Below, piece by piece: positions 1-23,431 of a stretch of DNA of 64,000 nucleotides. The number at the start of each line of letters is the position of its first letter. Position 1 is the first letter of the stretch. A model generated the notes under the pieces. That model ran no database searches. It was not told where the DNA came from and saw only the letters and a list, made by a program, of their open reading frames with translations. This DNA comes from Oopsacas minuta (Eukaryota; Animalia; Porifera). The translations under genes and the position numbers were made by a program. The stretch spans positions 186,001-250,000 of the forward strand of contig JAKMXF010000298.1 of assembly GCA_024704765.1 (NCBI GenBank). The letters are read 5' to 3'.

Positions 1-1146
1 TCCACTGGCTCTCTCACACGCTCTTTATGCTGTTTGGTTTGTAAATGGAATTACGTTGGATTTCAGGCGGATGATTTGCAATTGGGTTGGTCAGATTCAT
101 TTCTGTCATCAATTGGATTATCTGAGCTAATTGACGGTAATTATTGTAAAATAGGTAACACTGTGTTTCCTCCTGGTAAATGTATTGGTGGTTTGAATGC
201 TCAGAGTGCCAAAGATCTTGGCTTGAAGCTAGGTACACCAGTAGCTACTTCAATGATTGATGCACATGCTGGTGGGATCGGAATGATAGGCCCTGAGTTA
301 CCAGTGGAATTTGCTTGTAGTTATAAAAATGATATTTGTAGGAGGATGGCGTTGATTTGTGGCACTTCAACTTGTCATATGACAATATCTCGTCTCCCCG
401 TATACACTCAAGGAATATGGGGGCCGTATTATTCTGCTATGGTTCCTGGTTTCCATTTGAACGAGGCTGGTCAGAGTGCTGCTGGAAAACTTATTGATTT
501 TGTTATTGAAACGCATCCGTCTTACAAAGAACTCGCTACACTTGCAGACGATAACAAACACACTGTATATGCTGAACTTGAAAATATACTTGTCAAGTTA
601 GCAAATAAGTTGAATATTTCGCAAATATCGCTACTCACCAAAAATTTCCATGTTCTACCGGATTTCCACGGCAACAGATCACCGCTCGCAAGACCGGAAA
701 TGACAGGAATGATATGCGGGCTAACACTCAATAATAACCTGGAAAACTTGGCGATAATATACCTAGCAACTATACAGGGCCTCGCTTACAGTAGCAGGCA
801 TATTGTAGACAAACTAATTGAGAGTGGATACGAGATAGATTTTGTATTTATGTGTGGTGGCTTAATACATAACAAATTGTACGTACAATCACATGCCGAC
901 ATTCTAAACAAAATCGTGCTTATCAACAATGAAGAAGAAGCAGTGCTAATGGGGAGTTGCCTATTAGCAACAATAGCAGCTGGGGATACAGAGAATATCG
1001 AGGAAGCTATGCGAAAATTAATATCTGTAAAGACTATAGTGAACCCTGAACCTACAACATTAGGTTACCATAAGCAGAAATATAATGTGTATTTGAGTAT
1101 GAGTCAATCTCAATTGAATTATATTGAGATGATGCAAGATGTTTGA
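1..1146 (+). CDS. FGGY: FGGY carbohydrate kinase domain protein (5'-truncated by window edge)
   Basis: Frame is open from base 1 (STGSLTRSLCCLVCKWNY) to TGA at 1146. Contains FGGY-family motifs MIDAHAGG, ICGTSTCH, GIWGPY, NEAGQSAAG and PDFHGNRSPLA. Confidence 0.93.
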   Translation, partial: STGSLTRSLCCLVCKWNYVGFQADDLQLGWSDSFLSSIGLSELIDGNYCKIGNTVFPPGKCIGGLNAQSAKDLGLKLGTPVATSMIDAHAGGIGMIGPELPVEFACSYKNDICRRMALICGTSTCHMTISRLPVYTQGIWGPYYSAMVPGFHLNEAGQSAAGKLIDFVIETHPSYKELATLADDNKHTVYAELENILVKLANKLNISQISLLTKNFHVLPDFHGNRSPLARPEMTGMICGLTLNNNLENLAIIYLATIQGLAYSSRHIVDKLIESGYEIDFVFMCGGLIHNKLYVQSHADILNKIVLINNEEEAVLMGSCLLATIAAGDTENIEEAMRKLISVKTIVNPEPTTLGYHKQKYNVYLSMSQSQLNYIEMMQDV

Positions 1147-1446
1147 ATTTTGTTGTTGTTTACTAAAATCCACAATATATTTCCAATTTCTATTAATAAT
1201 ACACCTTGAAAGTATTGAAACCAATAACCACTGAAGGTATTAAAAATGGCAAAGTTCGATTATATTGCTATAATTATAATGTTCAGAGACCTTAGATCAG
1301 TCTCTGCCGAGTAATTTCTCCGAATTTATAATATCTTTCAATTTTTCTGCGAATCATTTTGCTCCCCAGACCTGCTCCGTGTTCATTACTATATAATTGT
1401 AAAGTGAATGTAAATACGATATTACCTTTCTAGTTTGCTATCAATA

Positions 1447-4400
1447 ATGGTTAGTGAAAGGAAAAGATTCAATAGTATCGATCAGTTAGCTTTTTCTAGA
1501 CAACATGTAAAGACATCCAAGAGCGTTGAAGATCTTACAACTATTTCTGGTGAGTGTATATTTGTATAATTATGTGAATTTTTTTCTAATTTATTCCAAA
1601 TAATTTTTGTTCAGACATATCTCCCGTAAATCTTCTTCCACCCAAACCTCCAAAACCTCACAAACCATCTCATCTCTCACAGCCTATTTCTCCAATTTTC
1701 AGAAATACAACTATATCATGTTCAGACTCAACAGGTACATTCATTGACATTCCTTTTGACAGATTTAGTAACCAACGTAAGAGCGAGCCTATTGTTCCAA
1801 CATTAAGCATTATAAATAAAGTAGAACCTGCAAAACCTCCAACGCGGCCTCCTAAGCCTCACAAGCCTGTTTTCATCCCCAGAATATCTGTAATAGACAC
1901 TACAGACTCATCTAAATGCTTGAAGCGAGCAGCTAGCTCTCCTAGTAGAAGAAGAGCTAACTATTCTAACTTTACTCTTGGTGAAGAAGATATAACAGAG
2001 GTAAGTATCTAACACCCCAGCACAGTGTACTATAGGAATGACGAATTGTTCTGAGACATAATTCTTCGGGAAGAGGACACTCTGAACTACCTTTTTGCAA
2101 TTTTGAGCAAATAAAACAGATTTATTGGTTTTGAGATGTGACCCTTTGTAGTGTAATAAGTATTTATTATATTATATTACTGATCTATTATTTGCCTGAA
2201 ACCTGTGTACGTACATACAATAATAAAAAAAAAAACTGTCTTTAGATAAAGATACATGACAAAGAATTGAGTGATTTCGCTTCACACATCCAGAATATGC
2301 TTGAGAAAGCAAGCAAAGAGAGACGTATTTCAGATGTAGCTACATTTGCTAACGAGCTGTTATCAGCTCCGATACTAACAGAGGAACATTTAGCTCTACA
2401 ACACAGCCAAAAACTAAAGTTATTCAGCCTAATGGTCTTGACAATAGAACCCAATACAGAAATCAGCTCTTTTGGATTTGATATAGATCTTTCTAACAAA
2501 GCAGTACACGTTTTGGTCGAGAAAAATACATCTTTTCCAAAGACGAAATCTTCGCCAACTTTGATAAATGTAATCTTGAAATCAAATGCTAAAGATTTGA
2601 TATCAATCTTCTTACAAACTGTAGATAGTGATTATGATAGAAATGAAAGTGATGATTATCTATTGAGGATATCTGGTACTCAGTTTTACCTTAAAAACAC
2701 AAAACTACCTCTTCATAGGTAAGTTTAGTAAAGTCTGGTTATACGTTGTTATGACGAGAATGGTGGTCCTTATATGCTTATTAGTTTCTTAACCATGGAT
2801 AGTGGATTTGATTTTCTTAAATTTACAGGTTTCAGTATATTCGCTATTGTCTGAGAAGGCGAGAAGCTCCGCGTTTTATGCTAGAACATGTACCTCGCTT
2901 ATATACAGAGTTTTGTAATACTATATACGAGGAAATTGATATAATCTCTAATGAGAAGTTCTTTGAAAATGCCTTCACTGATATTCTAAAAGAGTCATGT
3001 CCAGAATTGCTCTACTATCAACTCTTACAAGTACCAGTTGTCTATAAGACTCTCCTGGATAATCTGGAGATGATGAGAGAGAGCAAGGTTGAGGGTAAAG
3101 AATGGATGCATATTGGAAAACTTAAACATTTAGAACAAACTATTAAGTTATTAACTCTACAGATGGGTAAATTCAATTCATTTCTATTAGAAAATTCTCT
3201 CAATCAAATTTTCAAACTGCATTCTAGGTATGTTTCACAATTTGACTGGAATTTCTTTTTTACTATATTTTTCTTGATTTCTCACATTTGTTTTCATAAT
3301 AGTATATTTTATGTAAGCGGCTCCTACCTGTGTCAATCTCCCCTTGAAAACGGTTGGGGAGCGCAACTTCATGTGACGAAAATTATCTAATTTCTCATTT
3401 AGACATAAAAACTCAGGCTTAGACGCTAAAACCAAACAAACAATTGCAAATGAAATTCAGACCATAATCCTTGAGGTAGAAGATCAAGTAATCATGCATA
3501 TACAAGCATACTCCCTTTTGACTAAAATTCCTATTTCTCTTGGTTCAAACAAGAGTATTGAACAGGTATCACAGACAAGAACTTATCAACCTAACTTCCC
3601 ACGAAATAAGAACTCTAATCTTCACGTATGGATTGGAGGTATACACCGTATCCTGGATCATCAACCAACTAGACCGAAGCTGTACTATCTAGAAGCAGTG
3701 TTGATGTGTGGTGGAAATGAATTTTTAACTCCAGTGAGTTTTATCTCAGTCAAATCTCGTTAGATTGATATTTAGTATACATCGGTTATATCGAAGAATT
3801 ATCGTGGCTCTTGAGCTTGGGCATAACGGGAGTTAACTCTATACCTAGAAGTTATGATTAAATTATAATTATCCATTTTTCTATAGACTCGCTCAAGTTA
3901 TTGTCGATGTAATCCAGGCAGATTCTTCACATACATTCACTGTAATCTCAGTCTAGACTTAGGCGTTAATTTATACCAGATACCCAGAGAATGTTATCTC
4001 CGTATCTCTCTACACTCACAGCTTGAGACTGATGATTCATTCATCAACGCATCATTGAAAGCAACAGGGTATACACCTATATTCTGTACAAACGGAACTG
4101 TTAACAAACATTATGCGTATATACCATTAGCTGAAGATAAGGCAGATTTTCCTTGTGATTATTTAGCTCTTAATCATACTGAGAACAACTTAATGTTGTT
4201 AGAAATTCAGTTACAGAATATTCCTAAAAATTCATGGGATAGTCTACATCAGGAATTGACTGTAATTCCAGAAATATCTAACTCTAATTTAAATACGAGT
4301 ATTGATTCTGAATACTGTACACTTGGATCTTCCTTCAACACTCTGGGTAAGTTTATATTATACAGGAAACCTCCACTAAAGGGGAAACTGGGACCCTGTC

Positions 4401-7400
4401 ACCCCGTTTATGGAGTTTACACTGTAATTAAATTTATAATGGTGGTTTGTAACCATGGATAGAGTATTTTCTCATTGTCTGCTCCAATACTTCGCATAGG
4501 CTCCTCCAGCAGTATTTCATTTGGTACCAGCACAGCAAGCAGTCTCAGTACAAGTGCTGTATCAGAAGATTCCTGGAAATCTGCTCCTTCCTACAGTAGC
4601 AGAACTGTATCTATGTTTAATAATGCTGAACTCACTCAACACGAAGAGAAATACGTCACTCAGTTAATTCATAAAGATATATTCCAGAATCTGAGTAGAT
4701 ATGATAGGAAACTTATTTGGAGTCAGCGATTAAGGAATACTTATCCACACAACTTAACAACCTTGTCATTAATATGTCAATCAATGCCATACTGTGATTA
4801 TCAAGCCAGGAGAGAATTGACTTATTTCCTGAAGGATTGGCCACAGGAAAGGAGCCCTGGTTTATTACAAGGTCTGCACCCTTCTATTTGGCAAGCTGAG
4901 GTAAGTCTCTATCATATATCATTTAATTTATTCGGAAATAAGACCATTTATAATTTTCTAAATTTTAAGTGATACATGTCCCCTACAGAGGTTTATCCGG
5001 GAATTTCTGGGATAGTTAGCACTTTATGTCCTTCATGACTGCTGAACTGACCCTTTAGATGTCCGCCAAGCACCTAAATAAACCCATGTCCTCGTGTAAG
5101 CACCCTATGTTATATATTTCTCATATTTCCAGGCTAGAAATTGGATCATCGACAACATCTCAAAACTTGAAACAGAAACATTATGCTTAATGGCTCCACA
5201 GCTATTATACGCTGTACACTATGAGCCTTATCACTGGAATAGACTTGTTGAATTACTATTAGAGAAATGTCAATCTTCTCTAAGCTTTGCTCATACGCTA
5301 TTCTGGATATTGTCTTGTTCTATTCAATTGGATGGCGTAAAGGGAAATATCAAAATGAGGTTATTATTAATCAAATCGGCTATATTAGGGCTTTTGAATC
5401 ACAATGATAGAAGCGATCTATTGAGTCAAGAAACTTTATCTTCTTGTTTGAGTGAATTAGCTGAAGAAGTTAAGAATTCTAAGGAAGAATTACGTAAGAT
5501 TGTTCTGAAAGAAGGGCTCCTTGAAATATTGAAAAAGTTAGTTATAATGCATTCTAAGAATTTCTCCGTTTCCACAGGCCCGCTGTGGAGGTTTTATTGT
5601 AATATATTCAATATTATTCATGTAGAATGCCAGAGAAATTCAGTCTACCTGTAAATGCAGCAAGTTGCACTACTGGATTCAAGATAGCTCGTTGTAACTA
5701 TTTCAATAGTAACGCAGTACCACTCAGACTAAGTTTTATAAATTCAGATTCTTTGGGAGAAGATATAACATTGATGTTTAAGAAAGGAGACGATTTACGA
5801 CAAGATATGCTAGTGTTGCAAATCGTTAATATGATGGATAATCTATGGCAGAGCTATGGACTTGATTTGAATGTGTTAACATTCGCATGTAAACCTACTG
5901 GAAAAGATTCAGGATTTATTGAATTGGTTAAAGAATGCGAAACTTTTCGCGAAATACAGACACAAGTAAGTTTGAAATTTTTTGAATTCTGAAACTGGAA
6001 AATTCTGAAAAATTTGTTAAAATTTGTAAATTTTCTATGTTTTCCTATTGCAAAAATATTATAGGTTGGACAAGGCTTAATGGGTAGCGTGGCAGTAGCT
6101 CCGTTAGCTCAATGGCTACACAGACACAACCCTACAGAAGAGCTATACAAGTTAGCAGTAGAGACGTTTACTCGTTCATGTGCTGCTTGGTGTGTTGCTT
6201 CATATGTGTTAGGATTATGTGACAGACATAATGATAATATTATGCTCACTAGACAAGGCCATATCTTTCATATAGACTTTGGTAAGTTATCTGACCTACC
6301 AAAACGTTTTCCTGGGACCTGTATTTTACAGAGCTGTATTATATGATAATTTCCAGGTAAAATACTTGGACACGCACAAATGTTCGGTAAGATAAAGAGA
6401 GACAGAGCACCTTTCGTTCTAACCCCAGACATGGCTTATGTAATTGACGGGTGTGAACATAGTACTGTGTTCTTCCAACGATTCATAGATCTTGCCTGCT
6501 ACGCATACAATATTCTAAGAGAACATATGAATGTATTTCTCGGTCTAATTATGTTAACTCTACCTGCTAAAATGGATGTACCTAACTCTATTGAAGACGT
6601 TAAGTAAGTATATTTTATAAAAAAACGAGAAATTGAAAGTTAATTTTTCCGAAATGTTAGGTTCGTACATGATCAGTTACTGCCACTGGCAAGTAATGAT
6701 GAAGCAACAACTCATTTCACACGACTTATACGCGAAAGTAGAGCCTCACTTTCTACGAGATTGAACTTTTTCGTTCATAGTGTAGCTCAGCTTCGTAGCG
6801 GTAAATCTACTAGCAATACTCCGTTACTATCCTTTATTCTTGGGAATTATTCTAAACAGACAGAACCTGAAATTGTTAATATAAAAATGAAATCTTTTCA
6901 GAAAAGATATCATCCTGAAAAGTACTATTCATACATTCTAGAAGTAAGTTTCGATTTGTTTGTTAGTTTGTTAGTTTGTTTACTTTGTTTGTTTGTTTGT
7001 TTGTTATATTTTTAGGTTACAAAACAAATAAAGACTGATATGAGACAATTCAGTAGATCAGTTGAGTTATGTGCAAGTTTTGATCAAGATGGAAGGAATA
7101 AAGAAATAATCTTTCGCCGTTTCAAAGAGTTTCACGAGTTACACACAAAGTTACAAGAGACATTCCTCGAAGCTCCGTTACCAACTTTACCAGCTAAAAT
7201 TATATTAGGGAGGAGTTCTGTTAAAACTGTAGCTCAAACGAGGTTTAACGAATTAACACGGTTAGTTTATTATTGGCCACTTATTGACCCACGGACGACA
7301 ACAGGGGGTCCTCAGGATCTCAAAATTTGTATTGTAGTATAGGATGGGTCCATAGAAGTTGGGATATGGGACTGCTGCCCTAGGGGTTGCTGTTCTTCGA

Positions 7401-7997
7401 ATTTTTACATTGGATTCTTACAGGTATATTGAAGAACTATTAGCACTGCCTCCAAGAATATCACATTGTGATTTAATATATACTTTCTTCCATGGAACCT
7501 TACGTGACCGACAAGATTACGTATTCTACAGTACGACACATCCCTGCTCCTCACCGTTAACCAATTCTTCTGATTGCACGAAAACTCCACAAGCAAAACT
7601 CTGTATAACTCATTTTAAAGATAGAGGTCTGTTAAGTGTAATGGTAATGCATGTTAGGCATCTATCTGGTGCTAATATTACCATGATAAATGCTTCATTA
7701 CTACCTACGACAAAGGTAAAGTTAAAATTACAATTGAAAAACGGTGCAAATATTAAACGAAAAACACATTCAGTATCAAATTCGCCTGACCCAACTTTCA
7801 ATGAATCTTTCACGTTTAACACACAAGACTCTGATATAACTTCAATTATATTGAATGTATCTGTAAAAGAAATGAATTTAGGGAATATTATCTGTTGTAC
7901 AAATATTCATATTAGCGACCTTAATTTTACTCCCAAAACTTGTGTAAGATGGTTTGAGCTTGAAGTACTTGAGAAGGGTGAGCTATTTTTTAAATGA
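1447..7997 (+). CDS. PIK3C2A: Class II phosphatidylinositol 3-kinase (Pro-rich N-terminus, RBD, C2, helical, kinase, PX, C2); about 14 exons
   Basis: Kinase motifs [32 protein letters not shown] and KRDRAPF; PX ([10 protein letters not shown]) and C-terminal C2 domains define class II. Inferred exons: 1447-1549, 1615-2000, 2246-2718, 2829-3227, 3403-3733, 3887-4346, 4500-4900, 5133-5536, 5626-5965, 6065-6281, 6357-6603, 6661-6943, 7016-7260, 7414-7997. The vertebrate paralogue label (alpha) is nominal. Confidence 0.92.
3776..3843. mobile_element. MITE family A fragment in a PI3K intron
   Basis: GGTTATATCGAAG..GTGGCTCTTGAGCTT..ACGGGAGTTAACTCTATA matches the right part of the 14729 copy. Confidence 0.62.
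4361..4426. mobile_element. Very short TA-flanked MITE, family D
   Basis: TACAGGAAACCTCCACTAAAGGGG / CCCCGTTTATGGAGTTTACACTGTA form imperfect inverted termini; a related end lies at 8336-8358. Confidence 0.62.
6953..7005. repeat. Imperfect (TTTG)n simple repeat in a PI3K intron
   Basis: TTTGTTTGTTAGTTTGTTAGTTTGTTTACTTTGTTTGTTTGTTTGTTTGTT. Confidence 0.85.
7288..7377. mobile_element. MITE family C (hAT/Charlie-like) in a PI3K intron
   Basis: Core CGGACGACA..GGGGTCC.CAGGATCTCAAAATTTGTATTGTAGT is shared with 10462-10560. Confidence 0.7.
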
Positions 7998-8255
7998 TAC
8001 GTATACGCATATGTATATGCATACATCATATTTATTTGTATATATTTGTTTGTAAACGCATGCATGTTTATTTTATACGGATTTTAACATTTTATTATTG
8101 TTAAATATGTGTAATTATCGCTATTTATATGACTGTTTAATTATTTCACAGTCTTCAGATTATGATCGTTCTAGAGAGATTATTTCTTTTTGATGAGTAG
8201 GGGAAACTTCTGGGAGTGTAGTGAAATAAAATTGGGCGAAATCCTAGTCCCATAC

Positions 8256-8358
8256 GAATAGACCTCCACAAAAGGGCAATTTGCCGGAAACATGAGGAGG
8301 GGTAACATGTCTTGGCGTTCTTGGCAGGCTGGCACCCCCGTTTGTGGAGGTTACACTG
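8256..8358. mobile_element. MITE family D copy in the PI3K-MSP spacer
   Basis: ACCTCCACAAAAGGG ... CCCCGTTTGTGGAGGTTACACTG. Confidence 0.6.
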
Positions 8359-8416
8359 CATGTTGTTCCTCTCAAAATTAAATTATTTTAAGATTTATCC
8401 CGCTTCATAGTAAAGT

Positions 8417-9367
8417 ATGGCTGCTGAATGTGTGTTATCAATTTCGCCTGATGTTCTAAACTTCCCAGGATCTTACACACAAAATACATCTACAGAAATC
8501 ACATTGGCTAACACTTCGTTTAAGTCAGTGTACTTTAAGTTTAGTGTAAATCTGGCTAAAGGACATTGTCTTATACCTGCTCGAGGTGTTCTGCTACCAC
8601 ATGAATCTTGTCAAGTGAAAATAATGCTTGAAGCGTTCAAGGAAGAATCTATTGCAATAAACACAAAGTTTAGATTAGAATACTTGCAGAAAAATGATGA
8701 TTCTGTTATTGATAGTGTTGAGAATGTTTTCAAATGTTTCCCAGGCCGTAAACCTTTTCATTTGTTGAAATGTAATTTTGTCTGTACTAATCCCTTCGAG
8801 AATATTAGTAGTCATCAAGTTGAAACCTACGAAAATTTGCATAATCAAATAGGTATACTCCTTAAGGAAAATAGAGAATTGAAATGTCAAATTCAAAATT
8901 TGAATGCTATAGTCTTTCCTGCAAATGTTGAAAACTTCACTGACCCAATCGAGGGAATTGTTAACATTGAAAATCCATTCACGATAAATACGATTGCGGA
9001 AAGTATAAATAATTCCTTCCTAAAATTGGTGGATAAAATCAACCTGAAAAAGCATTCTATCTTGCTAGAAATTCAAAAAATACGAGAAAAGCATAAATCT
9101 GAGCTACAAACCCACACAAGCAAACTAATCCAATATAAAGAACAATTGAACAAGCATTGCAGCTACATTTCTAACGTACACGAAAACGTGGAACTTCAGG
9201 TTCTCGAAGATGTACACAAATTCTATACAAAGCGAGTAGACGAGCTCTCCCAAACAACTATTCCTGAACCAAAGTTATATTTTCGCATTCAAATGCAACC
9301 GATTGAAACAGCTTTTGATGTAAATATCCAATTTGGAGTTGAGGACTGTGAGACTCTTAAGAAATGA
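8417..9367 (+). CDS. MSP (major sperm protein / VAP-type) domain protein with C-terminal coiled coil and no transmembrane tail
   Basis: Single-exon 316 aa ORF. The N-terminus LSISPDVLNFPG..ITLANTSFKSVYFKF..LIPARGVLLPHESCQVKI fits the MSP-fold pattern. The C-terminal half is helical with heptad character. Confidence 0.7.
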   Translation: MAAECVLSISPDVLNFPGSYTQNTSTEITLANTSFKSVYFKFSVNLAKGHCLIPARGVLLPHESCQVKIMLEAFKEESIAINTKFRLEYLQKNDDSVIDSVENVFKCFPGRKPFHLLKCNFVCTNPFENISSHQVETYENLHNQIGILLKENRELKCQIQNLNAIVFPANVENFTDPIEGIVNIENPFTINTIAESINNSFLKLVDKINLKKHSILLEIQKIREKHKSELQTHTSKLIQYKEQLNKHCSYISNVHENVELQVLEDVHKFYTKRVDELSQTTIPEPKLYFRIQMQPIETAFDVNIQFGVEDCETLKK

Positions 9368-9443
9368 CTTGTGTGATACATAATTTTTGATATTTTCCTA
9401 GATTAATACGCAAGATTTTTGATAAATTTTGTTACAAATACTG

Positions 9444-9589
9444 TACAGTCTATAGGCGCTCAAGGGGCCGCTATATTTGCTTCGATATAACCGATGGAAT
9501 AAATATATGTTAGTTGACGGTTTGGGACCATATTTGCATAAATTCAGACTTCCATATATTACCGTATTTGATAACGGGAGTTGACTGTA
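9444..9589. mobile_element. MITE family A (Tc1/pogo-Tigger-like, TA-flanked)
   Basis: TACAGTC...GGGAGTTGACTGTA; shares GCTCAAGGGGCCGC and TTTGGGACCATATTTG..TTCAGACTT with the copy at 25278-25457. Confidence 0.8.
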
Positions 9590-9605
9590 TAGTATTTTAG
9601 CTTCT

Positions 9606-12209
9606 ATGTCTCATCCAAATTTACAATTAACGAAGAGCAGAGGATTACAAAGCTCATTGCCTCTGAATAAGAAGAGATCTACAGAGCTAACTCTTATAAC
9701 AACACCCAATCTTCTGGATCTACAGCTGAACCTTCCTGATCCTATAAATAGGCCAACATTCTCACTTGTGAGAGGTGTCAAAGTACCAACAACAAGTTCA
9801 TATTCTCAACCTAGCGTCACGTACTACCATCCTCCTACACAGCATCTCCCCAAGACACAACACCCTTCCAAACCACAAGTAAGTTGAACAACAATTATTC
9901 CTAGATTTGTAGATTTTAACACTTTTATACAGATGCCATTCCAAACACCCTTACCACACAGACAATACACTGCACCAGAACTTGGCAGTAGGAACAAGCT
10001 TCACATCGCGAATAATAACACACAAATACAAACACGTCCACACACACACCACCAGCTACAGAGAAATAGCATTATAAATACAGTACAGAGCTTAGATACA
10101 CCCAAAAACAGACCTGAAGAGAAAATATACAAACATACACGAGGTATATTCATATAATATGTTTATTAAAATTATTTATAATATTTGTATACACATAGAT
10201 GCAATGTTGTCAGAAAGCGCAGATTTTCCTGGTATACCTGTTATATACCGTTCAGATGAGATAAAGAGGTTATCTCCAGACAGACTTAATCTAGAAGGCA
10301 GACATCTAACTGTCATGCCTATATTTGAGAAGGAAGAACAGTTACGATTGCTTAACCTACAAATGAACATGATATCACGTATACAGCATATATCTTCATT
10401 GAAGAGTTTAATCTTCCTCGACTTATACGACAATCTAATTTCTGAGGTGCACCGTAAGAACCAGCAGTTCCCAACCTGGAGTCCATGAACCTGTGGGTGG
10501 TCCGCGGACGACAGTATGGGGTCCACATGATCTCAAATTTGTATTGTAGTCTATGGAACTAGTTTGACTAATATGTATCCCACCTATCTTTATAATATTT
10601 CCTTATTTAGATAACTGGACTAGATTCTCTGGTGTCTCTACGTGTACTAATGCTAGGCAAGAATCGTATTAGATTTATTTGTGGACTATCAAACCTCAAG
10701 AGATTGGATGTATTAGATTTACATGGAAACTTAATACAGGAAATCAAGAATCTGGACGAATTGCTAAATTTACGAGTTCTTAATCTTGCTGGAAATCAGC
10801 TTAGCATTGTGGATGGATTGGAGAAGTTAAAGAATTTAGATGAGCTTAATTTCCGTAGAAATAAGATTAGAAATGTGATAGGTTTGAATGAATTACCACT
10901 ATTACAGAGATTGTTTCTGGCTCACAATAATATCACAGATATTGATAACCTCAATAGCTTTATACAGTGTAATGCTCTACAGGTAATTACAAGTGTATTG
11001 AACACCGGCCAGTCAATTGACTGTATTCTTAGTTTTAAAGTATTTATTACCTTCAATTAGGATTTGACGCTTGATAACAATCCAATACAACACAGTGTTC
11101 TATACAGACCTGCTGTACTTCAAATATGTCCTACACTAAGACATCTGGATGGTATAGCTGTTGATGAAGAGGATAGGAAAACATTAATTACTGCTATGAA
11201 GAAGATTGAAGCTAAGAAAGATGAAGAGAATAGACAAGTTCTTATGAAGGCGAGAAGACAGCAAACTTTAGTATTTTTGAGAGAAAAATTCTTTTCTTTG
11301 CATCCTCAACTTAAGATTGATGATTATGGTATTGAGCAGGTAAATATTTCTAATTAAAGATGAATTAAAGTGGAAACAACAATGGAAACTGTTGCAGTGT
11401 ATTCCTGCAATTTGTTCAATTTCCCTTTTCCGAGCTGTTCTTAAATCTTAGTTTCCACTTTCCCATTTGTTTAGTAGAATATTGTTTATTAGTTGCATAC
11501 ATTTCGATATTTCCAGACAGAAGAGAGTAGTATTCCTCATCAAGAAGTAGCTGATTGTATATACGAAATATCTGGCGATAGCATCAGGTTCTACGGAGAA
11601 GCTAGTCTTGAGTATTTAGACAAAACTCATCCTCATGGAATAAAAGAAATAATATTCTTGTATATCGATTTTGATTCCTTTCTTCCTTATTTACAACGTC
11701 TGAGGGTAAAATTACCTGATGTTAGAAAGATAGAATTCTTCTACAATAATATTAATACCTTAAATCAGATTAATGCGTTGGGTTTCATTGGATTGGAAAT
11801 AAATGAATTGACCATTTCACCGGATGGAAACCCAGTCACTTTATGCAGTTTCTTCGCGAATTACGTCAAATTTCGTTTAAGACATTTGAGACTTAAAATA
11901 CTCAACGGGGAGCCAATTACTGAAGTAGAATTTCCACCAACTTTTTTGTTTAAACACGAGAAATATCCATCAGAAAATTCCTCAAATTTTCTCGATTATT
12001 GTACTGAGAATATTTCAGAATTTTATCCTAAACATTTGAAGGAAGCTAACAGAATTACTTTACAAACTAAAGATAATTCTATCAAGAGAAGGGTTAGAGA
12101 TATTTGGTTCTATGAGGTCTGGAGTGAAGTATTCAGTGAGGTAATACAAGATAATTTAAGAGAAATGCAGGATTTGGATAAATATACGAACAAATATTTA
12201 TCGCAATAA
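9606..12209 (+). CDS. LRRC49: Leucine-rich repeat-containing protein 49 (tubulin polyglutamylase complex subunit); multi-exon
   Basis: FPGIPVIYRS..DRLNLEGRHLTVMP..LRLLNLQMNMI..LIFLDLYDNLI..LRVLMLGKNRI..LDVLDLHGN matches LRRC49 as I recall it. The ORF-track pieces join through GT-AG introns (about 9878-9932, 10144-10198, 10447-10611, 10983-11060, 11340-11516). Confidence 0.88.
10462..10560. mobile_element. MITE family C in an LRRC49 intron
   Basis: Left end CAGCAGTTCCCAACCTGG (Charlie-type TIR) plus the GATCTCAAATTTGTATTG core. Confidence 0.72.
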
Positions 12210-12344
12210 GTTGTAAAAATGATCAGATATCACGAATATATTATTATCATAATTACCTAAATATTTTTATTTATTCGTTCTCCGCGAAAAATTACCAATT
12301 TATACATTCTTTCGCGAAATTCAGTTAGATAAATCAACAAATCC

Positions 12345-13475
12345 ATGGCTACTTGTAATGATAATGACGATAAAGTTGAAACTTTTACTACAGCCAAACC
12401 CAAGCTATATTCAAAATGTGTTAAATGCGGAAATAAAGCTAGTATAATAGCCAGGATTAAAGATGCTATGTGTATAGGCTGTTTCGATGCATACTATGTG
12501 CATAAATTTAGAGCAGCTTTAGGAAAATCCCGTCTCTTTCTAAACGAAGAACGTGTTTTATTAGCTTATTCAGGTGGAATAAACTCTGTTTCTCTATTGA
12601 GTATGGTGAAGAGAGGGCTTGATGAATCAAGTCATAAGAAACTACAATTCTTAGTTGATGTTATTTTTATTGATGAAGGATGTTTGTTTGGTGATACTTG
12701 GAATTCAGAAAATATATTAATGATTGAAAATCTCACTACCTTGGGGTTTCGTTTCTATATTTTGAAACTTGAATCTTATCTTCATCCATCGTTAAAACTA
12801 TGTATTCAAACATTTGACACATTAACGATAGGTTGGCCAGTTTACACTATCCATTTGGAATGTGAAAAGTCGCGATTATTGAAGATATTTGAGAGTTGTC
12901 ACAGCAGTAATAAGCAACAACTTTTGGAACTAATTCGTTACAAATTATTAACAAAATTCGCATATGAATTTGGTTATAATAAGATATTGATGGGAGATAA
13001 TGCTACGAGATTGTCAACACAGTTATTACATGGAATTTGTCGTGGAAAAGGTTCATTGGCAAATTATGATATTACATTCGCAGATACGAGATTCCCTGGT
13101 TTATATTTCTGTAGACCGATGAGGGAATTTCTAGCAAAAGAGATAGTATTTTCAGTTAATATTTCTAAGTTAAAATATTTCAATTTCCCGAATTTCGATA
13201 GTGTAAATAGAAGTGCAAATAAGTCTTCAATCTTCCACGTAACTGAGGATTTTCTCGCGGAACTTCACAGTTTACAACCATTCACTACGAGTACAGTATT
13301 CAGAACAGGAAACAAATTATCTCCTTTAAATACTGGACAATCTAATATATGTGCTCTGTGTATGTTAACACACGAATATTCTATAACGAATACTACTCTA
13401 TGTTATTCCTGTCAGAGGATATGTGATAATGTAAAAGGAGAGTTTGTTACTTTGTTACCGATTCTATTCATGTAA
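12345..13475 (+). CDS. CTU2: Cytoplasmic tRNA 2-thiolation protein 2
   Basis: CVKC..C..CF..Y..HKFRAALGK, degenerate PP-loop LLAYSGGINS, RPMREFLAKEI, STVFRTGNKL, and C-terminal CYSC. Single exon. Confidence 0.92.
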   Translation: MATCNDNDDKVETFTTAKPKLYSKCVKCGNKASIIARIKDAMCIGCFDAYYVHKFRAALGKSRLFLNEERVLLAYSGGINSVSLLSMVKRGLDESSHKKLQFLVDVIFIDEGCLFGDTWNSENILMIENLTTLGFRFYILKLESYLHPSLKLCIQTFDTLTIGWPVYTIHLECEKSRLLKIFESCHSSNKQQLLELIRYKLLTKFAYEFGYNKILMGDNATRLSTQLLHGICRGKGSLANYDITFADTRFPGLYFCRPMREFLAKEIVFSVNISKLKYFNFPNFDSVNRSANKSSIFHVTEDFLAELHSLQPFTTSTVFRTGNKLSPLNTGQSNICALCMLTHEYSITNTTLCYSCQRICDNVKGEFVTLLPILFM

Positions 13476-13560
13476 TGGTGTATTGTATTATTATAATTTC
13501 ATAGGAGAATTCTATGTAAATTTCTTTATAAATTCGTGGTTTTCGTATATTTTAGAAAAA

Positions 13561-14670
13561 ATGTATCGGCTAGTCTTCTCTAACGATTTCCGTCACATTT
13601 CTCGTCTCAGAACTATTCTAATCTCGAAAACAACTCCACAGCCCCAGCGTTATATCTCAACAACACCAGTCCTTGCTAGTACCAGTAATAACCCAAAACA
13701 CCAGTTAATCGCATCACAAGAAATCTTAGAGAATGCTCTGACAGATTTTAAGTTAGAAACTGAGCTAACAAAAGCTCGGAGTATGCAAATATGGACAGCA
13801 GCAATGACTACATTCAGAACCAGAGATCGATTTAACACTGGCTTTATGATATTTATAGAGAACGCAATGAATCGCATGGAAGAGCTCAATGTTGATCTCG
13901 AGGTAGAAGCATACAACCAATTGCTAGACTGTTTCCCTAAAGATAAATACGTCACACGGACATATCTTGACATAATATTTCCACCACCATACCCTGCCAT
14001 GGAACTATCATTAGATATCTTAACCAAAATGGAAGAGAAAGGCATTAGACCAAATGACAATACGTTTAGTATTGTGTATAAAGGTTTTGGCCGTGCTAGC
14101 TTACCCCTACTCAAATGTAATAGGATAATGTATTGGTTTGATAGATTTGAGAATCATGATCCTTACTCAATGAAAGGCGATATTCCTTATACAAATCCTC
14201 TTGCTTTATTCGACTTAACTTGTTCTAGAATTTTCCAAGAGTTTTACCAGCCGAAACATCTCACTGTATTTCTCGAAGACACTAATAGCGCTTTTAAATA
14301 TGTATACGGATATGAAAGTGATAGTATTAGGAAATCCTGTGAATCATTTGATCCTGTTGAAAAAGATTTGATTATAGAAGGCCCGCATTTAATGTGGTTA
14401 CAAAAGCATAAAGAACATTATTTTACAGTCCGTGAGTTAGCGAAGAATCGTGCAGCAGAAGATGAAGGTGAAGTTCTTGCTATTGGGTTAACAGGATCTG
14501 GTTGTGTGCGCTCTCTTGAATATTTTGTTGAAAAATTATCAAAGAAATATAGTAACATTGCAGATGCTACTCCCTTCTATTCTATTAAAGAACCTGATGT
14601 TGTTAAAGGATTGGTTGTTCCCTCTGATGTTTTTCTAGAATCAGATGTTGAGAATCTTACTACAGTGTAG
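13561..14670 (+). CDS. ECSIT: ECSIT (complex I assembly factor / Toll pathway intermediate)
   Basis: ATG at 13561 begins an Arg/Ser-rich presequence-like segment (MYRLVFSNDFRHISRLR). YNQLLDCFPK, LTKMEEKGIRP..FGRASLP..WFDRF and IIEGPHLMWL match ECSIT. Confidence 0.88.
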   Translation: MYRLVFSNDFRHISRLRTILISKTTPQPQRYISTTPVLASTSNNPKHQLIASQEILENALTDFKLETELTKARSMQIWTAAMTTFRTRDRFNTGFMIFIENAMNRMEELNVDLEVEAYNQLLDCFPKDKYVTRTYLDIIFPPPYPAMELSLDILTKMEEKGIRPNDNTFSIVYKGFGRASLPLLKCNRIMYWFDRFENHDPYSMKGDIPYTNPLALFDLTCSRIFQEFYQPKHLTVFLEDTNSAFKYVYGYESDSIRKSCESFDPVEKDLIIEGPHLMWLQKHKEHYFTVRELAKNRAAEDEGEVLAIGLTGSGCVRSLEYFVEKLSKKYSNIADATPFYSIKEPDVVKGLVVPSDVFLESDVENLTTV

Positions 14671-14728
14671 AAACGATTTTACTGACGGTATTCAATTATA
14701 TCCCATGTTAAAATACTATTTCTAACTC

Positions 14729-14889
14729 CAGTGAACTCCAGTTATATCGAACACGGATACATCGAATACCCGCTTAGAATGAAATTATACAAATATGGTC
14801 ACAAAACGTCGAATAACTTCTATTTCATCGATTATAGCGAAGTATTATTGCGGTCCCTTGAGCTTCGATAGGACGGGAGTTGACCTGTA
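14729..14889. mobile_element. MITE family A, opposite orientation
   Basis: CAGTGAACTCC...GGGAGTTGACCTGTA; carries the reverse complements of the family-A internal motifs (GCGGTCCCTTGAGC; TACAAATATGGTCACAAA). Confidence 0.78.
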
Positions 14890-14956
14890 TTTATCATAAT
14901 ATTTCTCATAATTTCAAAGTTTTTATGCCTTTTAAGATAGAATTTAGATTTTCAAA

Positions 14957-17050
14957 ATGTTCACTCAATTAATTCAAATAGTTTTCAACTATCTAAGAGA
15001 TCTGATAACCCGAATTTTCACTTGGATAAGACATGGACACATGATCACTGACAACAACCAGCAATCTCCCATACCCTCTCCTACTCGAATTCTCCACACC
15101 CCCCCATATTACTATAACCAAATATCATTTAATTCAAATACTCCAATACAATACACTAGTATTGGTTCAAATACTTGTGAATACAGACATGAATGCTATC
15201 AATTTGAAGACGATGGTTGGAATTCAGATCCTGATACAAATGATCCAACATTATTCAATTCTAATACACTCACTACATCATATTTGACCTCAAACGAATA
15301 CATAAACTCAATGTCCCATCTATCTGAGTATGAGCTACTCAATGATTTGTATTCATATTTCTTCTCACAAAAACAAGCTACAATCGATGATATTGGTAAC
15401 ATTCTAAACCATTTATTAGTTAGGCAGCAAGATCCTTATTCATTCTCAATTAGAGTTGTAAATCTTATGAAAAAGTTGAAGTTAGGGCGTTGTTCTCCAT
15501 CAAAACTCTGCTTAACAGTTCTTGAAAATTTTCTACAGGAAAATACTTTCCCTGTACTAACACTCACTCACCAAATACAAGCACTAGAAGTTGGTGTATT
15601 ATGTCCACCCTCAATACTCGATGAGCTATGCAGAATATATCATTGCGATTCTCTTAGCGATGAAATAAAATGTCGAGTAATGAAAGAACTAATAACATCA
15701 AATCAATACAAGGAAGCAAGCGTGGCCATTACAAGATTCGGGCTTCAAGCCTTTTTCTCGGTTGAGGAAATATTGCCTCCGCTGATTGGTACGGACCAGA
15801 TTAACCTAATTCAAGCCTATATAGGATCAGACACTGATCTACAAATACAATTTATAATGCTATTAGATAAACTATGTTCTCCACACACAGATTATCTGAG
15901 ACTCTATTCTTACTATCAAAGCAGTGGTTTTGCTAAAGGAAGTATTGCTAATAATAAACTGTGTGAGCATCAAATTAAGCGTCTAGCAGGCAGGCTTATC
16001 AATACGTATGAACTAGATGCTAGTCTATTTGTCCACTTCACTACAGCTAAAGTTTCCTCCTTCACTGCTTCATTACTACATCAGTATTATGTTTTAAAGG
16101 GTAATGACAAGCAAATTCATGCCAAGAATTGGATCGACCTTTTGACTGCTTCTGTAGCACAGAGTGAAGAGTTACAGATTAATCTTGTTGAAGAATTGGT
16201 CCTTTACAATGATTATAAAATCGCGGTTTATATCGTGAATTATTTCAACTTATCACAGAAAATTCCAGAATCGATTTCAGACCTACTTTCTAATACAAGG
16301 CCATATGATCCAAGTAACTATCGTAATTCAATTTCTGGTTTTAAAAATACAAAATTCTACCCTCTAAATATCAATTTTGATAATATCATACTAATAGATA
16401 CACCAGCTAAACTACAAAAATGTCAAGAGAATATTTCCAATAAAGGCACTGTAATAGGAATTGATGCTGAATGGCTAATGCCAAATTGTAATTTCGGAAT
16501 TCTAAGACTTGCTATTCTCCAATTAGCTACAAGAGATTTCATTTTCCTTCTCGATATGGTTGTCCTTACGGGAGCTGTTTCTCAATCACAACAAGTTTCG
16601 TTTATCCAAACTCTCTTCCATTCGTCTGACACGATAAAGCTCGGTTTCGCTATTGAAGGTGATTTGAAAATGCTGGGTAGAACTTGGCCATGTGTAGCAA
16701 AACTATTAAATGATCCTACGTCTACGATTGACCTACAAACTGTAGCTGATAGCATAAAATCTAGAAGCGACGGTTTGACGAATACGCCCTCAAATTCAGA
16801 TATTAGTCCACAAGTATGTGAAGCTCGAAATGCCGAGGCCATGTCAATCCAATCTTTATCCAAGAAGACAAGTTTGACCAAACTAATAGAAGAATGTTTT
16901 GGTCTCCCAATGGATAAATCTAACCAGATTGCAAACTGGGAGAAGAGACCTATACGAGATGATATGAAAATTTATGCTGCACTGGATGCCTTCTGTTTAA
17001 TTGAACTTTTTGATTATTTTAAGGATAAATTTGGTGATACGATATTTTAG
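14957..17050 (+). CDS. EXD3: Mut-7/Nibbler-type DEDDy 3'-5' exonuclease
   Basis: ExoI GIDAEW, ExoII EGDLKML and ExoIII YAALDA are intact; DKSNQIANWEKRP; N-terminal helical region. The ORF stops directly after the nuclease domain. Single exon, 697 aa. Confidence 0.88.
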   Translation: MFTQLIQIVFNYLRDLITRIFTWIRHGHMITDNNQQSPIPSPTRILHTPPYYYNQISFNSNTPIQYTSIGSNTCEYRHECYQFEDDGWNSDPDTNDPTLFNSNTLTTSYLTSNEYINSMSHLSEYELLNDLYSYFFSQKQATIDDIGNILNHLLVRQQDPYSFSIRVVNLMKKLKLGRCSPSKLCLTVLENFLQENTFPVLTLTHQIQALEVGVLCPPSILDELCRIYHCDSLSDEIKCRVMKELITSNQYKEASVAITRFGLQAFFSVEEILPPLIGTDQINLIQAYIGSDTDLQIQFIMLLDKLCSPHTDYLRLYSYYQSSGFAKGSIANNKLCEHQIKRLAGRLINTYELDASLFVHFTTAKVSSFTASLLHQYYVLKGNDKQIHAKNWIDLLTASVAQSEELQINLVEELVLYNDYKIAVYIVNYFNLSQKIPESISDLLSNTRPYDPSNYRNSISGFKNTKFYPLNINFDNIILIDTPAKLQKCQENISNKGTVIGIDAEWLMPNCNFGILRLAILQLATRDFIFLLDMVVLTGAVSQSQQVSFIQTLFHSSDTIKLGFAIEGDLKMLGRTWPCVAKLLNDPTSTIDLQTVADSIKSRSDGLTNTPSNSDISPQVCEARNAEAMSIQSLSKKTSLTKLIEECFGLPMDKSNQIANWEKRPIRDDMKIYAALDAFCLIELFDYFKDKFGDTIF

Positions 17051-17252
17051 CATATTTTCCTAATCGGTTTCTAATTCGTTGAATATGATCTTTTTACGAT
17101 TAATAATGTTAACAATAATTTATATTACTTCCCGTATAGCATCTTTTAGTTTCAACTAATTATTAGTCTTCATTCAATAGTCATAGTTTACTCGTTTGTA
17201 TAATAACATTACGTTAATGTATTACAGTCAATTAATTTTAAATAGAGTTAGA

Positions 17253-18421
17253 ATGGTTAAGCTATGGCTCAACATACTCATAGTATTTACTATGATCTTA
17301 ACGTGTTCATTTGCATCAGATTGTATTGAATGCCCAGCTGGTACATACAGTAATCATAGTGATATTAGCTGCAGTAATTGTACAGCAGGTTCATGTACAG
17401 ATACAAAAGATTGTGTTCCATGTCCCCCTGGGTTTTATTCAGCTGATTCGGGACAAGAAGCTTGTTTTGAGTGCGAGAGAGGATATAACCAGTCACAACC
17501 GAAAAAAACTGAATGCAAGCCTTGCCCTGTTGGTACTTATGGTAATAAAACACAGCTACTTCTATGTGAGCTTTGTAATCCAGGTACTTACAATAATATA
17601 ACAGGTCAAACTGAATGTGTTCCCTGCGCCAAGGGTAAATTTCAATCACAGAAGGGGCGAAATCAATGTTTAGATTGTATTAAAGGTAGAGTATGTAACG
17701 AGACAGGTTGTGATGTGTGCACGCTATGTCAAGCAGGCGAAGCTTCTCAGAATGCTCTCTACTGTAATCCATGTATGCCTGGTACCAGTACCTCAGGGAA
17801 GGAGGGATATTCCGTATGTGTAGGTTGTAGTGCTGGAACCTTTTGTTCTGATATCGGTTGTAAAGTTTGTGACGATTGTAAAAAAGGTAAGCACTGCTTA
17901 TTAAGTACTTTAAATTTTACAGCGTGTTATGCATTTATTTTGTAGGTGAATACTCGCCTTATTCTTCATCAAAGAAGTGTTTGAAGTGTAATATTGGGCA
18001 GTACCAGCCCAAAGTTGGGAGTCGAGAATGTTTACCTTGCGACCCTGGAAAATATCAAATTGCACACGCTCAAAGCAAATGTATAAATTGTCCGCCAGGG
18101 TATTTCTGTCCAAATACTAACTCAGGGCCCATAGATTGTCCGGATAATGCATACTGTCCGGAAAATTCGGCATCTCCTCAAACATGCCAAGCTCTATTCG
18201 TACCAAACAATGCTAGTCTAGCTAGGTACTGTATTCCAGATACTATTTTGTATGTTACTGTTGCTATTTCATTAGCGATGGTAATTCTCATCGTAGCTTC
18301 ACTAGCCTTTGCGATTGCATGTCGAATCCATAAGAATAAGATCCTTAAAATTGAAGAGAGTAAATCATTATTGCCCTCAATGAGAAAGCCAGTGAAGAAC
18401 CCAGATTACCAAGGATTGTGA
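17253..18421 (+). CDS. Type I membrane protein with Cys-rich CxxCxxGxY repeats (ephrin-receptor-like/GCC2-GCC3, TNFR-like)
   Basis: Signal peptide MVKLWLNILIVFTMILTCSFA, tandem C..C..G.Y units, TM ILYVTVAISLAMVILIVASLAFAIAC, and a 32 aa tail. Exons 17253-17886 and 17946-18421. Confidence 0.8.
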
Positions 18422-18646
18422 AGGTTTTTAGAGAAATCGTTGTATATTTTACCTATTTTGATTGGAATATATCTACATTTGACATACTTGTCTTTGGTTC
18501 ATGTATTTTACTAGCTCTATTCTGAGTATTGTGATTAAGCAGGTTTTGTTAGAATGAATTTGGTTTTTTTGCAAATATATTACCATATAAATTCAGATTA
18601 TTTGTGATGTTTTAATCTTACTAGTTTGTTCATAAAATTCATTTTA

Positions 18647-21358
18647 ATGTCACGAATAATAATAAAAAACCTCCCACAAAAAATCAAAGATGATAAACTA
18701 AAGAATAAATTTCAAGAGATTGGTCACGTCACAGATTTACGGATTATTCGTACGAAAGATGGATTTTCGCGGCATTTTGGTTATATTGGATTTATGGAGA
18801 GTGATTCAGGTCTGAGAGCTGTTGAGCAGTTTAACGATACATATCTTGAAGGAATGAAAATTCAGGTCGAAATCGCGAAAAGTTTTAATGACCCAAATTT
18901 ACCACGGCCATGGAGTCGTTTTTCGAAAGGAAGCTCAGCTTATAACCAGAGAGAAGTTAAAAATATTGTTAAAAGGCCTAAACATACTACTAAAAATGAT
19001 TCTGATAGCAAAACGAATTCGGCTAGCACTGACAAAGAGAAAAATCCGGATTTGGACGAATTCCTCTCTATGTTTGATAAAAGATCTAAATTGGAAACAG
19101 AGAGAATACCTGAAATAAATGATTTGAAAGCTTCAACTGACCCTATGACAGATTTGGATTACATTAAATCTAAAGTTAACAAGAATATGCCCAACGATAC
19201 AACTCCAGTAAAATTCACAATTAAGATTATAGGTTTGCCATTCAAATCAACTCCACACGACATTAAACAGTTCTTCTTGCCAATAATGCTAGAAGATGAT
19301 GCTATTAGGATAATAAGAAATAAGAAAAACCGTCCTACAGGTAGAGCTTATGTAGATTTCAAATCTCGTAAGGAGATGTACAAGGCTCTTAGAAGAAATG
19401 GAGAGTTTATTAAAGATAGGTGAGTATACATTAAACCATTAGTGGTCCATTGAAGGTCCATTGAAGATAGCAGGGGTTCGCTGGATCTCAATTATTTGTA
19501 TTGTTTTTATGGGAGCGTGTCCACAGAATGTTTTAAATTTGTATAAGGGGTGGAGTCTACGGAGTTAAAGATGTTGGGAACCACTGCTATATGATCCTCT
19601 GTATATCCAATTTCCGTGTTTTGATACTTCAATTCTCTTCTTAGATACATAGAACTATTTCAAGACACACTCAACAATGAATCAATAGAATCCTCAGTGA
19701 GAGAACAGCAAGAAGAAACAACAGATCAACTATTAGACCACGGTAGATTATTCGTTAGAAATCTATCTTACAATGTAACTGAATCTGATATACAAGAGCT
19801 ATTCTCTCAATACGGAGCCCTCTCAGAAACTCATCTTCCTGTTGACTCTCTTACACATAACTCTATCGGGTTTTGCTTTGTAACGTTCATGTTTTCTGAG
19901 CATGCTTGTCTAGCTATGTCTGAGCTAGATGCTTCTATATTCATGGGTAGGATTATACATATAATGCCAGCAGAACCTAAACCAGAGAAAGAAATTATAG
20001 AAATGGACATGAAACCAACTAGCTATAAGGATAAGAAAAAGAAGGAATTGAAATTACAAGCTAATAGCTCATATAATTGGAATACATTATTTTTAGGTAA
20101 TGCTTATGTTTCCATGGCAACGAAAGATATGTCTATCAATTAGTAATTGATTTTAACAAAAATTCACCAAATTTTATCTCTCTTAGGTTCCAATGCAGTT
20201 GCAGAAGCTATTTCAAAGAAATACGGTGTTACCAAGGGTAAATTACTGGACCGAGAAGAATCATCGTCTCTAGCTGTAAGGATGGCTTTAGCTGAAACTG
20301 AGATTGTAAGCGAGACGAAACAATTTTTGCAACAAAATGGGATTGATATTGACGTATTAACAAATACAGATGGCAAGATACAAAGATCTAAAACTATTAT
20401 TCTAGTCAAGAACTTACCATTCGGTACAACTGCTGAAGAACTGGATGTATTATTTTCACCATTTGGTACTCTAGATAGAGTTATAATTCCGAAATATGGA
20501 ATAACTGGTGTTGTAGAATATTTAAGCAAGAGTCAAGCTAAAATTGCATTCAGTAGACTAGCGTATTCCAAATTTAAGCATTTACCGTTGTATTTAGAAT
20601 GGGCACCCAATGGCATATTCACTCTTAAAGATGATGATGCTGATATTGGTAATGAGCAAAAATTGAACAGTGAAACTACTCACTACACAATCTATGTGAA
20701 AAATCTTAACTTTTCGACTGAAGAAAAAACTCTTGAAAAATTATTTGAATCGTTTAAGCCAATTCAAACTTCCATTTCTCGAAAACGTAATCCAAATAAT
20801 CCAAAGGAGATGCAATCAATGGGGTATGGATTTGTAAAATTCGGAGATTTTCTCAGTGCTAAAAATGCGATTATAGAAAAACAAGGCTGTATAGTGGATG
20901 ATCATAAGTTAGAGATAAGTTTAGCGAAGCAGCCTAAAGAACACAAAATGGCTCTCCCTAAAAAGCAAGTTGTGACTACACCGAATGAAAATGCTCCAAA
21001 TGTACTTGTAATTAAAAATATCCCATTCGAAGCATCGAAAGCTGAAATCTACGCACTTTTCAATAGATTTGGACAACTCAGATCCTTACGGTTACCGAAA
21101 AAAGTTATTACTCGTGACAATACAAAACATCGCGGATTCTGTTTTGTGGATTTTTTCAGCAAAGACGATGCTTCGTTAGCTTTCAATTCTCTCAGAAGTT
21201 CAACTCATCTCTACGGAAGAAGGTTAATCCTTGAATATGCAACGGATGAAAATGATATTGAGAGACTTAGGGATAAGACAAAACAGCAATTTGTTTCTGA
21301 CAAGACAACAATATCTACCAACAAGAAATCTAAAATAGAAATTGAAGATATTAGGTAG
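18647..21358 (+). CDS. RBM19: Multi-RRM nucleolar protein RBM19/Mrd1
   Basis: MSRIIIKNLP, GRLFVRNLSY, YNWNTLF, AVRMALAETE, RSKTIILVKNLP, PLYLEWAP and HLYGRRLILEYA. Exons about 18647-19419, 19645-20097 and 20187-21358. Confidence 0.93.
19441..19586. mobile_element. MITE family C in RBM19 intron 1
   Basis: Core GGATCTCAATTATTTGTATTG and right end GTTGGGAACCACTG. Confidence 0.72.
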
Positions 21359-23162: not shown

Positions 23163-23431
23163 TTGGTTTTGACTTTACATAAGTGTATTTTGTAATAAAT
23201 AAGCTCTTATATAATTTATACTGCAGAGTCTATCGCAACTATGCTAGAATATTCAATTTTAATATAACTCGACAATCATATATTAATGTCTAACATGCTT
23301 ATTGTAAAATACGTAAAAATGTACACGTATAACGCTTAATGACGTCTAACCACATTTGTAATTGAATAAGTAACTCCATTTCTAATTATGTTTTCTTAAA
23401 ATATTTCTCTACCATTTTACTAGACCAATTA

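Follow-up and report, generated by a model that had tools for sequence, protein, structure and literature searches.

Nine unrelated genes lie head-to-tail on the + strand at the start of a 64,000-nucleotide window of the genome of the glass sponge Oopsacas minuta (assembly GCA_024704765.1, contig JAKMXF010000298.1; position 1 of the window is position 186001 of the record). The gaps between them, measured from stop codon to ATG, are 85–419 bp, so that the array shows the co-orientation and close spacing expected of an operon. An earlier note on this DNA had proposed that the genes are transcribed polycistronically. The eight gap lengths that it listed (300, 419, 238, 135, 85, 286, 202 and 225 bp) were reproduced exactly when we recomputed them, and its gene starts and stops were the same as those in the deposited gene calls of the assembly. 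The window DNA has a G+C content of about 35%. Genes are densely packed over the first 37 kb, where tandem gaps measure 85–419 bp, and more loosely over the remainder (gaps of 610–1610 bp).

The names given to the genes held at the level of Pfam domains, i.e., FGGY_C, PI3_PI4_kinase, Motile_Sperm, LRR, CTU2, ECSIT_N, 3'-5' exonuclease, Ephrin_rec_like and RRM and, for the gene on the opposite strand that ends the run, TRAF-MATH. The gene called LRRC49 gave LRR-type matches only, which are generic. The product of the exonuclease gene matched solved chains described as "Exonuclease mut-7 homolog", i.e., EXD3. Multi-exon genes were searched one exon at a time, and their introns were inferred by a script from the annotated protein lengths, for use in splice-site statistics; with this intron model, a PI3K start at 1447 agreed with the annotated 1620 amino acids (aa). 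Rfam and tRNA scans gave no match inside the array. The features are listed in Table 1.

Table 1. Genes and gaps of the array and its 3' boundary, in window coordinates (MITE, miniature inverted-repeat transposable element; ORF, open reading frame; UTR, untranslated region)
Feature	Position	Strand	Evidence or content
FGGY carbohydrate-kinase gene, 3' part, cut by window start	1..1146	+	ORF 34–1146 vs FGGY_C, 3.9e-47
FGGY-PI3K gap, 300 bp	1147..1446	+	ATTAAA at +92; TATATA at −57; CTAG acceptor-like site ending 1433
Class II-type PI3K gene, 1620 aa, ~13 introns	1447..7997	+	PI3K_rbd, PI3Ka, kinase, PX and C2 domains
PI3K-MSP gap, 419 bp	7998..8416	+	conserved PI3K 3'UTR, first ~170 nt; insertion ~8150–8365; TAG ending 8410
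MSP-domain gene, single exon, 316 aa	8417..9367	+	Pfam, deposited gene call
MSP-LRR gap, 238 bp	9368..9605	+	MITE ~9444–9589; TTAG ending 9600
LRR gene (LRRC49 in the earlier note), 691 aa, ~5 introns	9606..12209	+	LRR-type match
LRR-CTU2 gap, 135 bp	12210..12344	+	CGCGAAA at 12283 and 12310–12319; CAG and TAG ending 12324 and 12328; without canonical poly(A) hexamer
CTU2 gene, single exon, 376 aa	12345..13475	+	Pfam, deposited gene call
CTU2-ECSIT gap, 85 bp	13476..13560	+	TATAAA at 13527; T-rich tract with TAG ending 13555; no sequence conserved in six genomes
ECSIT gene, single exon, 369 aa	13561..14670	+	Pfam, deposited gene call
ECSIT-EXD3 gap, 286 bp	14671..14956	+	MITE ~14728–14889; TAGs ending 14940 and 14947
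EXD3 (mut-7 homologue) gene, single exon, 697 aa	14957..17050	+	Pfam, structure-chain match
EXD3-receptor gap, 202 bp	17051..17252	+	six-genome block 17166–17185; TATA-like box 17199–17206; CAGT ~27 nt past box; promoter-like
Cys-rich receptor gene, Ephrin_rec_like repeats, one 59-nt intron	17253..18421	+	Pfam, deposited gene call
Receptor-RBM19 gap, 225 bp	18422..18646	+	3'UTR blocks ~18463–18510; TATAAA at 18586; CTAG ending 18624, then conserved ~20-nt leader
RBM19-like gene, several RRM domains, 798 aa	18647..21358	+	Pfam, deposited gene call
RBM19/TRAF convergent gap, 481 bp, end of run	21359..21839	.	ATTAAA at +13 (RBM19); AATAAA at +108 (TRAF)
TRAF gene	21840..23162	-	TRAF-MATH; without YAG ahead of ATG; TATAAA at −58

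Of 24 genes of the window, 22 have a TAG or CAG trinucleotide (YAG) in the 25 nt that precede the ATG, compared with 10 of 24 on the antisense strand and a frequency of 42% in random intergenic windows (p = 4e-7); all eight downstream genes of the array have one. In 13 of the 24 genes the YAG was accompanied by a pyrimidine-rich tract, a combination seen in 16% of background windows. Because the YAG was in frame with the start codon in only five of the 22 cases, an artefact of stop codons is excluded. The site was present in every orthologue examined in the related genomes described below, and at RBM19 the ~20 nt from TAG to ATG were conserved in three species. Strong splice donors, scored against a reference set of 44 inferred introns (inferred minimum length, 48 nt), were mostly absent from the gaps, so that these acceptor-like sites are unpaired.

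Such a signature is consistent with spliced-leader (SL) trans-splicing as published for glass sponges. Trans-splicing has been reported for hexactinellids (Douris et al. 2010, as cited in PMC7986045), and in Aphrocallistes vastus a leader of about 37 nt was carried by about 4% of long complementary DNA reads (PMC10282587). Operons are stated explicitly not to have been reported in hexactinellids (PMC7986045), the Oopsacas genome paper puts the intergenic distance at 2 kb on average, with no mention of operons or trans-splicing (PMC10280926), and our own literature search on glass-sponge operons found no report. Because YAG also precedes genes with upstream gaps of 0.6–1.9 kb, it would mark the use of a leader (or a start motif), not membership of an operon. 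The only two of the 24 genes without the site were TRAF and a homeobox gene (43422–44175), both on the − strand. Each has a TATAAA at −58 or −60 and an AATAAA some 90–110 nt past the stop codon, and the two may form a conventional class, separate from the putative leader-accepting genes of the array.

The strand bias described in the earlier note was confirmed, with 23 of the 27 window genes on the + strand (two-sided binomial, 3.1e-4) and 20 of the 26 neighbouring pairs on the same strand (p = 0.005), but both tests are post hoc, the window having been chosen because it looked unusual. The further remark that all four minus-strand genes are regulatory agrees with the names of two of them, TRAF and the homeobox gene, the other two being candidate bZIP-like genes; with n = 4 it carries no weight.

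Relatives of the locus were found via homologues of ECSIT, which lay on genomic contigs of five sponge genomes (L002, L007, L008, L012 and L013/L014) at 60–75% identity. In all six genomes, as far as the contigs reach, PI3K, MSP, LRR, CTU2, ECSIT, EXD3, the receptor gene and RBM19 follow one another on one strand, and are followed by TRAF on the opposite strand and then by a WD40 gene. A more distant ECSIT (L009, 41% identity) had other neighbours. Because the conserved order includes the opposite-strand TRAF gene, it represents general microsynteny and is not specific to an operon. Lengths of three tandem gaps are compared in Table 2; the remaining gaps of the array varied two- to three-fold among the six genomes, insertions being part of the cause. 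The convergent RBM19/TRAF gap was 453–843 bp among the genomes compared, and the divergent TRAF/WD40 gap was 269 bp in O. minuta, against about 700 bp in each of three relatives. At this one locus, the tandem gaps are thus shorter than half the divergent plus half the convergent gap, which favours overlapping or shared transcription.

Table 2. Lengths (bp) of three tandem gaps in six sponge genomes
Gap	O. minuta	L002	L007	L008	L012	L013
CTU2-ECSIT	85	69	75	87	141	67
EXD3-receptor	202	183	178	148	191	184
Receptor-RBM19	225	175	209	239	188	203

Two further sequences related to ECSIT came to light. A contig of 3141 bp (L003/L004; ENA ERZ26869290 ctg151826) holds the same ECSIT gene in two inverted copies and is probably a fold-back assembly artefact, and a short Logan contig (L006) contains ECSIT alone and is indistinguishable from DNA. 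For six single-exon proteins of the window, a large protein collection contained the genome's own copy alone, with no transcript-derived copies.

Alignment of the orthologous gaps revealed a block upstream of the receptor gene (17166–17185) that was conserved in all six genomes. Within it, the 17-mer GTCTTCATTCAATAGTC was identical in O. minuta and L007 (positions 13642–13658 of the latter) and near-identical in the other four genomes. The block is followed 10–15 nt on by a TATAAT-like box (17199–17206) and, about 27 nt further, by CAGT, the whole lying some 50–90 nt before the ATG. This is a classic promoter layout and argues for a putative internal promoter at the receptor gene. Counts of 9-mers shared between orthologous gaps were mostly at null level, and the six-genome alignments were more informative.

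The alignments also showed conserved blocks in the first ~170 nt past the PI3K stop codon and the first ~100 nt past the receptor stop codon, some of them of UGUA type; the two genes therefore have real 3'UTRs. Elements of the UGUAUAUA type, which are Pumilio-like, occurred at 8037–8046 and 18440–18447 and in the gaps past the receptor gene in the relatives. Their position in conserved blocks after the stop codon suggests conserved regulation through the 3'UTR.

The gap between CTU2 and ECSIT was different. It measures 67–87 bp in five of the six genomes, and both genes are intronless in O. minuta. Nothing in the gap was conserved in the six-genome alignment, and the final 40 codons of CTU2, where a promoter might be hidden, were not more strongly conserved at synonymous sites than codons elsewhere. 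Together, these two results mean that there is no detectable trace of an ECSIT promoter. The TATAAA at 13527 is ambiguous, since its distance from the TAG would suit a TATA box and its initiator, while its place just ahead of an acceptor would also suit a variant poly(A) signal. The earlier note had argued that 85 bp can hardly accommodate a 3'UTR, a promoter, a first exon and a 5'UTR intron. For CTU2-ECSIT, with its maintained spacing and its lack of a conserved promoter trace, the argument still stands, but it did not extend to the rest of the array. This pair is the best candidate for a bicistron in the array, and we put the chance that it is a true two-gene operon at about even.

Canonical poly(A) hexamers (AATAAA or ATTAAA) occurred in three of the eight gaps of the array, and two of these occurrences lie in inserted sequence, i.e., the AATAAA at 9498 within the MITE of the MSP-LRR gap and that at 8225 within an Oopsacas-specific insertion in the PI3K-MSP gap. 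The five gaps without one follow LRR, CTU2, ECSIT, EXD3 and the receptor gene. Across the dense tandem gaps of the window, the hexamers were absent from 11 of 14. When species were combined, a hexamer was present within 175 nt of the stop codon in 6/8 cases for the run-terminal genes RBM19 and TRAF, versus 7/26 for internal gaps (Fisher p = 0.03, post hoc). A motif of the GTATATTTTA type was also considered as a general 3'-end signal and was rejected, because it was not general.

Two gaps have been lengthened by MITEs, as the earlier note had claimed; their removal leaves about 92 and 124 bp. The elements belong to a MITE-like family of about 90–170 bp with inverted ends ACGGGAGTTGAC, which has copies in the gaps (~9444–9589 and ~14728–14889) and in introns (3749–3837 and 25282–25453). 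The insertion in the PI3K-MSP gap (~8150–8365) is about 215 bp long, GC-rich and missing from four related genomes. It contains a 15-nt inverted repeat (8262–8276 and 8337–8351); no further copy was found in the window, and Rfam gave no match.

With modest confidence, we read the locus as a dense, conserved array of genes that would mostly have their own promoters and accept a spliced leader, with read-through tolerated and CTU2-ECSIT a possible bicistron. Most likely, each array mRNA would receive the leader at the TAG or CAG a few bases before its start codon. Some transcripts would also continue into the following gene, and since such RNA can be rescued by a spliced leader, genes in tandem could be packed very tightly. 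Several observations weigh against this interpretation. The tandem gaps (67–419 bp) are far below the convergent gap (453–843 bp) and the divergent gap (269 or ~700 bp) at the same locus, and five of the eight array gaps lack AATAAA/ATTAAA, both as an operon would predict. No k-mer was significantly enriched, once multiple testing was allowed for, in the 100-nt stretches preceding 24 start codons, and no promoter motif common to the gaps emerged; TATAWA clustered weakly, at −57 to −61, in just four genes (PI3K, RBM19, TRAF and the homeobox gene), and the TATA-like boxes of PI3K and RBM19, where the relatives could be compared, were not conserved. Finally, the sites before the ATG score below true intron acceptors (median about 3 versus 8.5 bits), and some YAGs lie at TATA-to-initiator distance and could alternatively be transcription start motifs.

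Alternatively, the genes might be strictly separate units with very compact promoters. Compaction and slow rearrangement would then have left them co-oriented as a passive side effect, and the YAG would be either the leader acceptor of a short outron belonging to each gene or part of an initiator-like motif. The divergent TRAF/WD40 gap holds two promoters in 269 bp, so that a promoter and 5'UTR can fit into ~135 bp, and the TATA-like boxes just mentioned, the one of ECSIT at −34 (at TATA-to-initiator distance from the TAG) and the promoter-like footprint of the receptor gene all agree with this. Two E2F-like CGCGAAA sites, 30 and 60 nt upstream of the CTU2 ATG, also agree, but they are weak evidence for a promoter because the heptamer is about 10-fold over-represented window-wide, genes included. 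Strictly separate units are harder to square with a CTU2-ECSIT gap held at 67–87 bp without a conserved element or synonymous constraint at the 3' end of CTU2, with the strong strand bias, with the lack of a shared promoter motif, or with the known behaviour of RNA polymerase II, for which termination in such short gaps would be difficult; we regard them as possible but doubtful. An explanation by cis-splicing, in which the acceptors belong to 5'UTR introns whose first, non-coding exons were missed by annotation, would place the true starts further upstream and make the gaps smaller or turn them into overlaps. Weak donor-like sites do occur in several gaps, and there is one strong donor 47 nt before the ATG of a 224-aa RRM gene, but in the LRR, CTU2, receptor and CEP70 gaps no donor reaches the 10th percentile of the scores of true ones, and most other candidate introns would be shorter than the 48-nt minimum. 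We consider this explanation extremely improbable.

At the other extreme stands a true polycistron of nine (or more) genes, with one promoter upstream of FGGY and SL trans-splicing coupled to formation of the preceding 3' end, on the model of the operons of nematodes or tunicates or the directional clusters of kinetoplastids. The earlier inference of polycistronic transcription was sound insofar as the layout is operon-like, acceptor-like sites are present and the animal class uses spliced leaders; the single nine-gene unit did not fare so well. It would account for the nine co-oriented genes and the one-sided strand usage, for an acceptor-like site ahead of every downstream ATG, for the scarcity of hexamers in the gaps and their higher frequency at run-terminal genes, and for tandem gaps far below the adjacent convergent and divergent ones. 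However, the array is probably not one unit, given the conserved promoter-like block and TATA-like box ahead of the receptor gene and the conserved 3'UTRs of genes upstream. The genes are also functionally mixed, a membrane receptor and an MSP-domain protein among them, the synteny takes in an opposite-strand gene, and acceptors are found at genes with long upstream gaps, all of which led us to judge a nine-gene polycistron very unlikely. A less demanding version is that these sponges transcribe parts of same-strand arrays as polycistrons that are cut by SL trans-splicing, with CTU2-ECSIT as a conserved bicistron and the gaps free of poly(A) signals reflecting coupled 3'-end formation of the kinetoplastid kind; this we entertain only tentatively, as rather unlikely.

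Comparison with known systems places the array between several types. With the operons of the nematode Caenorhabditis elegans it shares co-oriented unrelated genes, gaps of ~100–400 bp, an acceptor near the downstream ATG and an SL-using lineage. Operons that contain internal promoters, termed "hybrid", are also found in C. elegans. In operons resolved by SL2, however, an AAUAAA lies ~100 nt before the acceptor and downstream genes receive a dedicated SL2, whereas most gaps of the array lack a canonical hexamer, no specialized leader is known, and the array is known from genome sequence alone. The operons of tunicates (Ciona and Oikopleura) resemble it in their compact genomes, single leader type and very short intercistronic regions. 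They reportedly favour housekeeping genes and leave out developmental regulators, which the earlier note's remark on minus-strand genes echoes. Most of their intercistronic regions do not exceed a few tens of bases, a spacing to which only CTU2-ECSIT comes near, and they rest on transcript data where the array rests on genome sequence.

The directional clusters of kinetoplastids likewise consist of long same-strand runs of unrelated genes, with strand-switch regions but lacking a consensus poly(A) signal, and 3'-end formation in these organisms is coupled to downstream trans-splicing. Such clusters comprise tens to hundreds of genes with essentially no gene-specific promoters, whereas the present run contains nine genes, is stopped by the opposite-strand TRAF gene and includes a promoter-like footprint at the receptor gene. 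Runs in the window are, unlike those of kinetoplastids, interrupted by opposite-strand genes bearing TATA boxes. The trans-splicing of hexactinellids is that of the same animal class, and the acceptor-like sites are its expected genomic footprint; the published reports cover the leader, not operons.

To our knowledge, animal operons occur in a handful of lineages, all of which use spliced leaders, and we know of none reported in sponges. If confirmed, operons in glass sponges would be the first in Porifera, would extend polycistronic transcription to one of the animal groups that branched off earliest, and would provide a fresh case for whether spliced leaders drive the formation of operons. 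The locus offers a concrete site for a test, i.e., an 85-bp gap between two intronless genes with spacing held in five of six genomes, and, within the same array, an internal contrast in a receptor gene with its own conserved upstream element.

Three observations concern the window at large. The CGCGAAA heptamer, which is E2F-like, occurred at 24 sites, versus 2.6 expected from dinucleotide-preserving shuffles. Among them are 5945–5954, 12283–12289, 12310–12319, 18765, 18874, 61928 and 61939, and two of the 24 sites are the palindrome TTTCGCGAAA. A start codon is no more than 250 nt away at about 10 of the sites, but many of the 24 fall inside coding sequence. Between the divergent TRAF and WD40 genes, whose gap is 269 bp, a CRE-like TGACGTCT site occupies 23338–23350, about 90 nt upstream of the WD40 ATG. 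Lastly, a tRNA-Leu (AAG) gene lies on the − strand at 63120–63201, near a LETM1-like gene.

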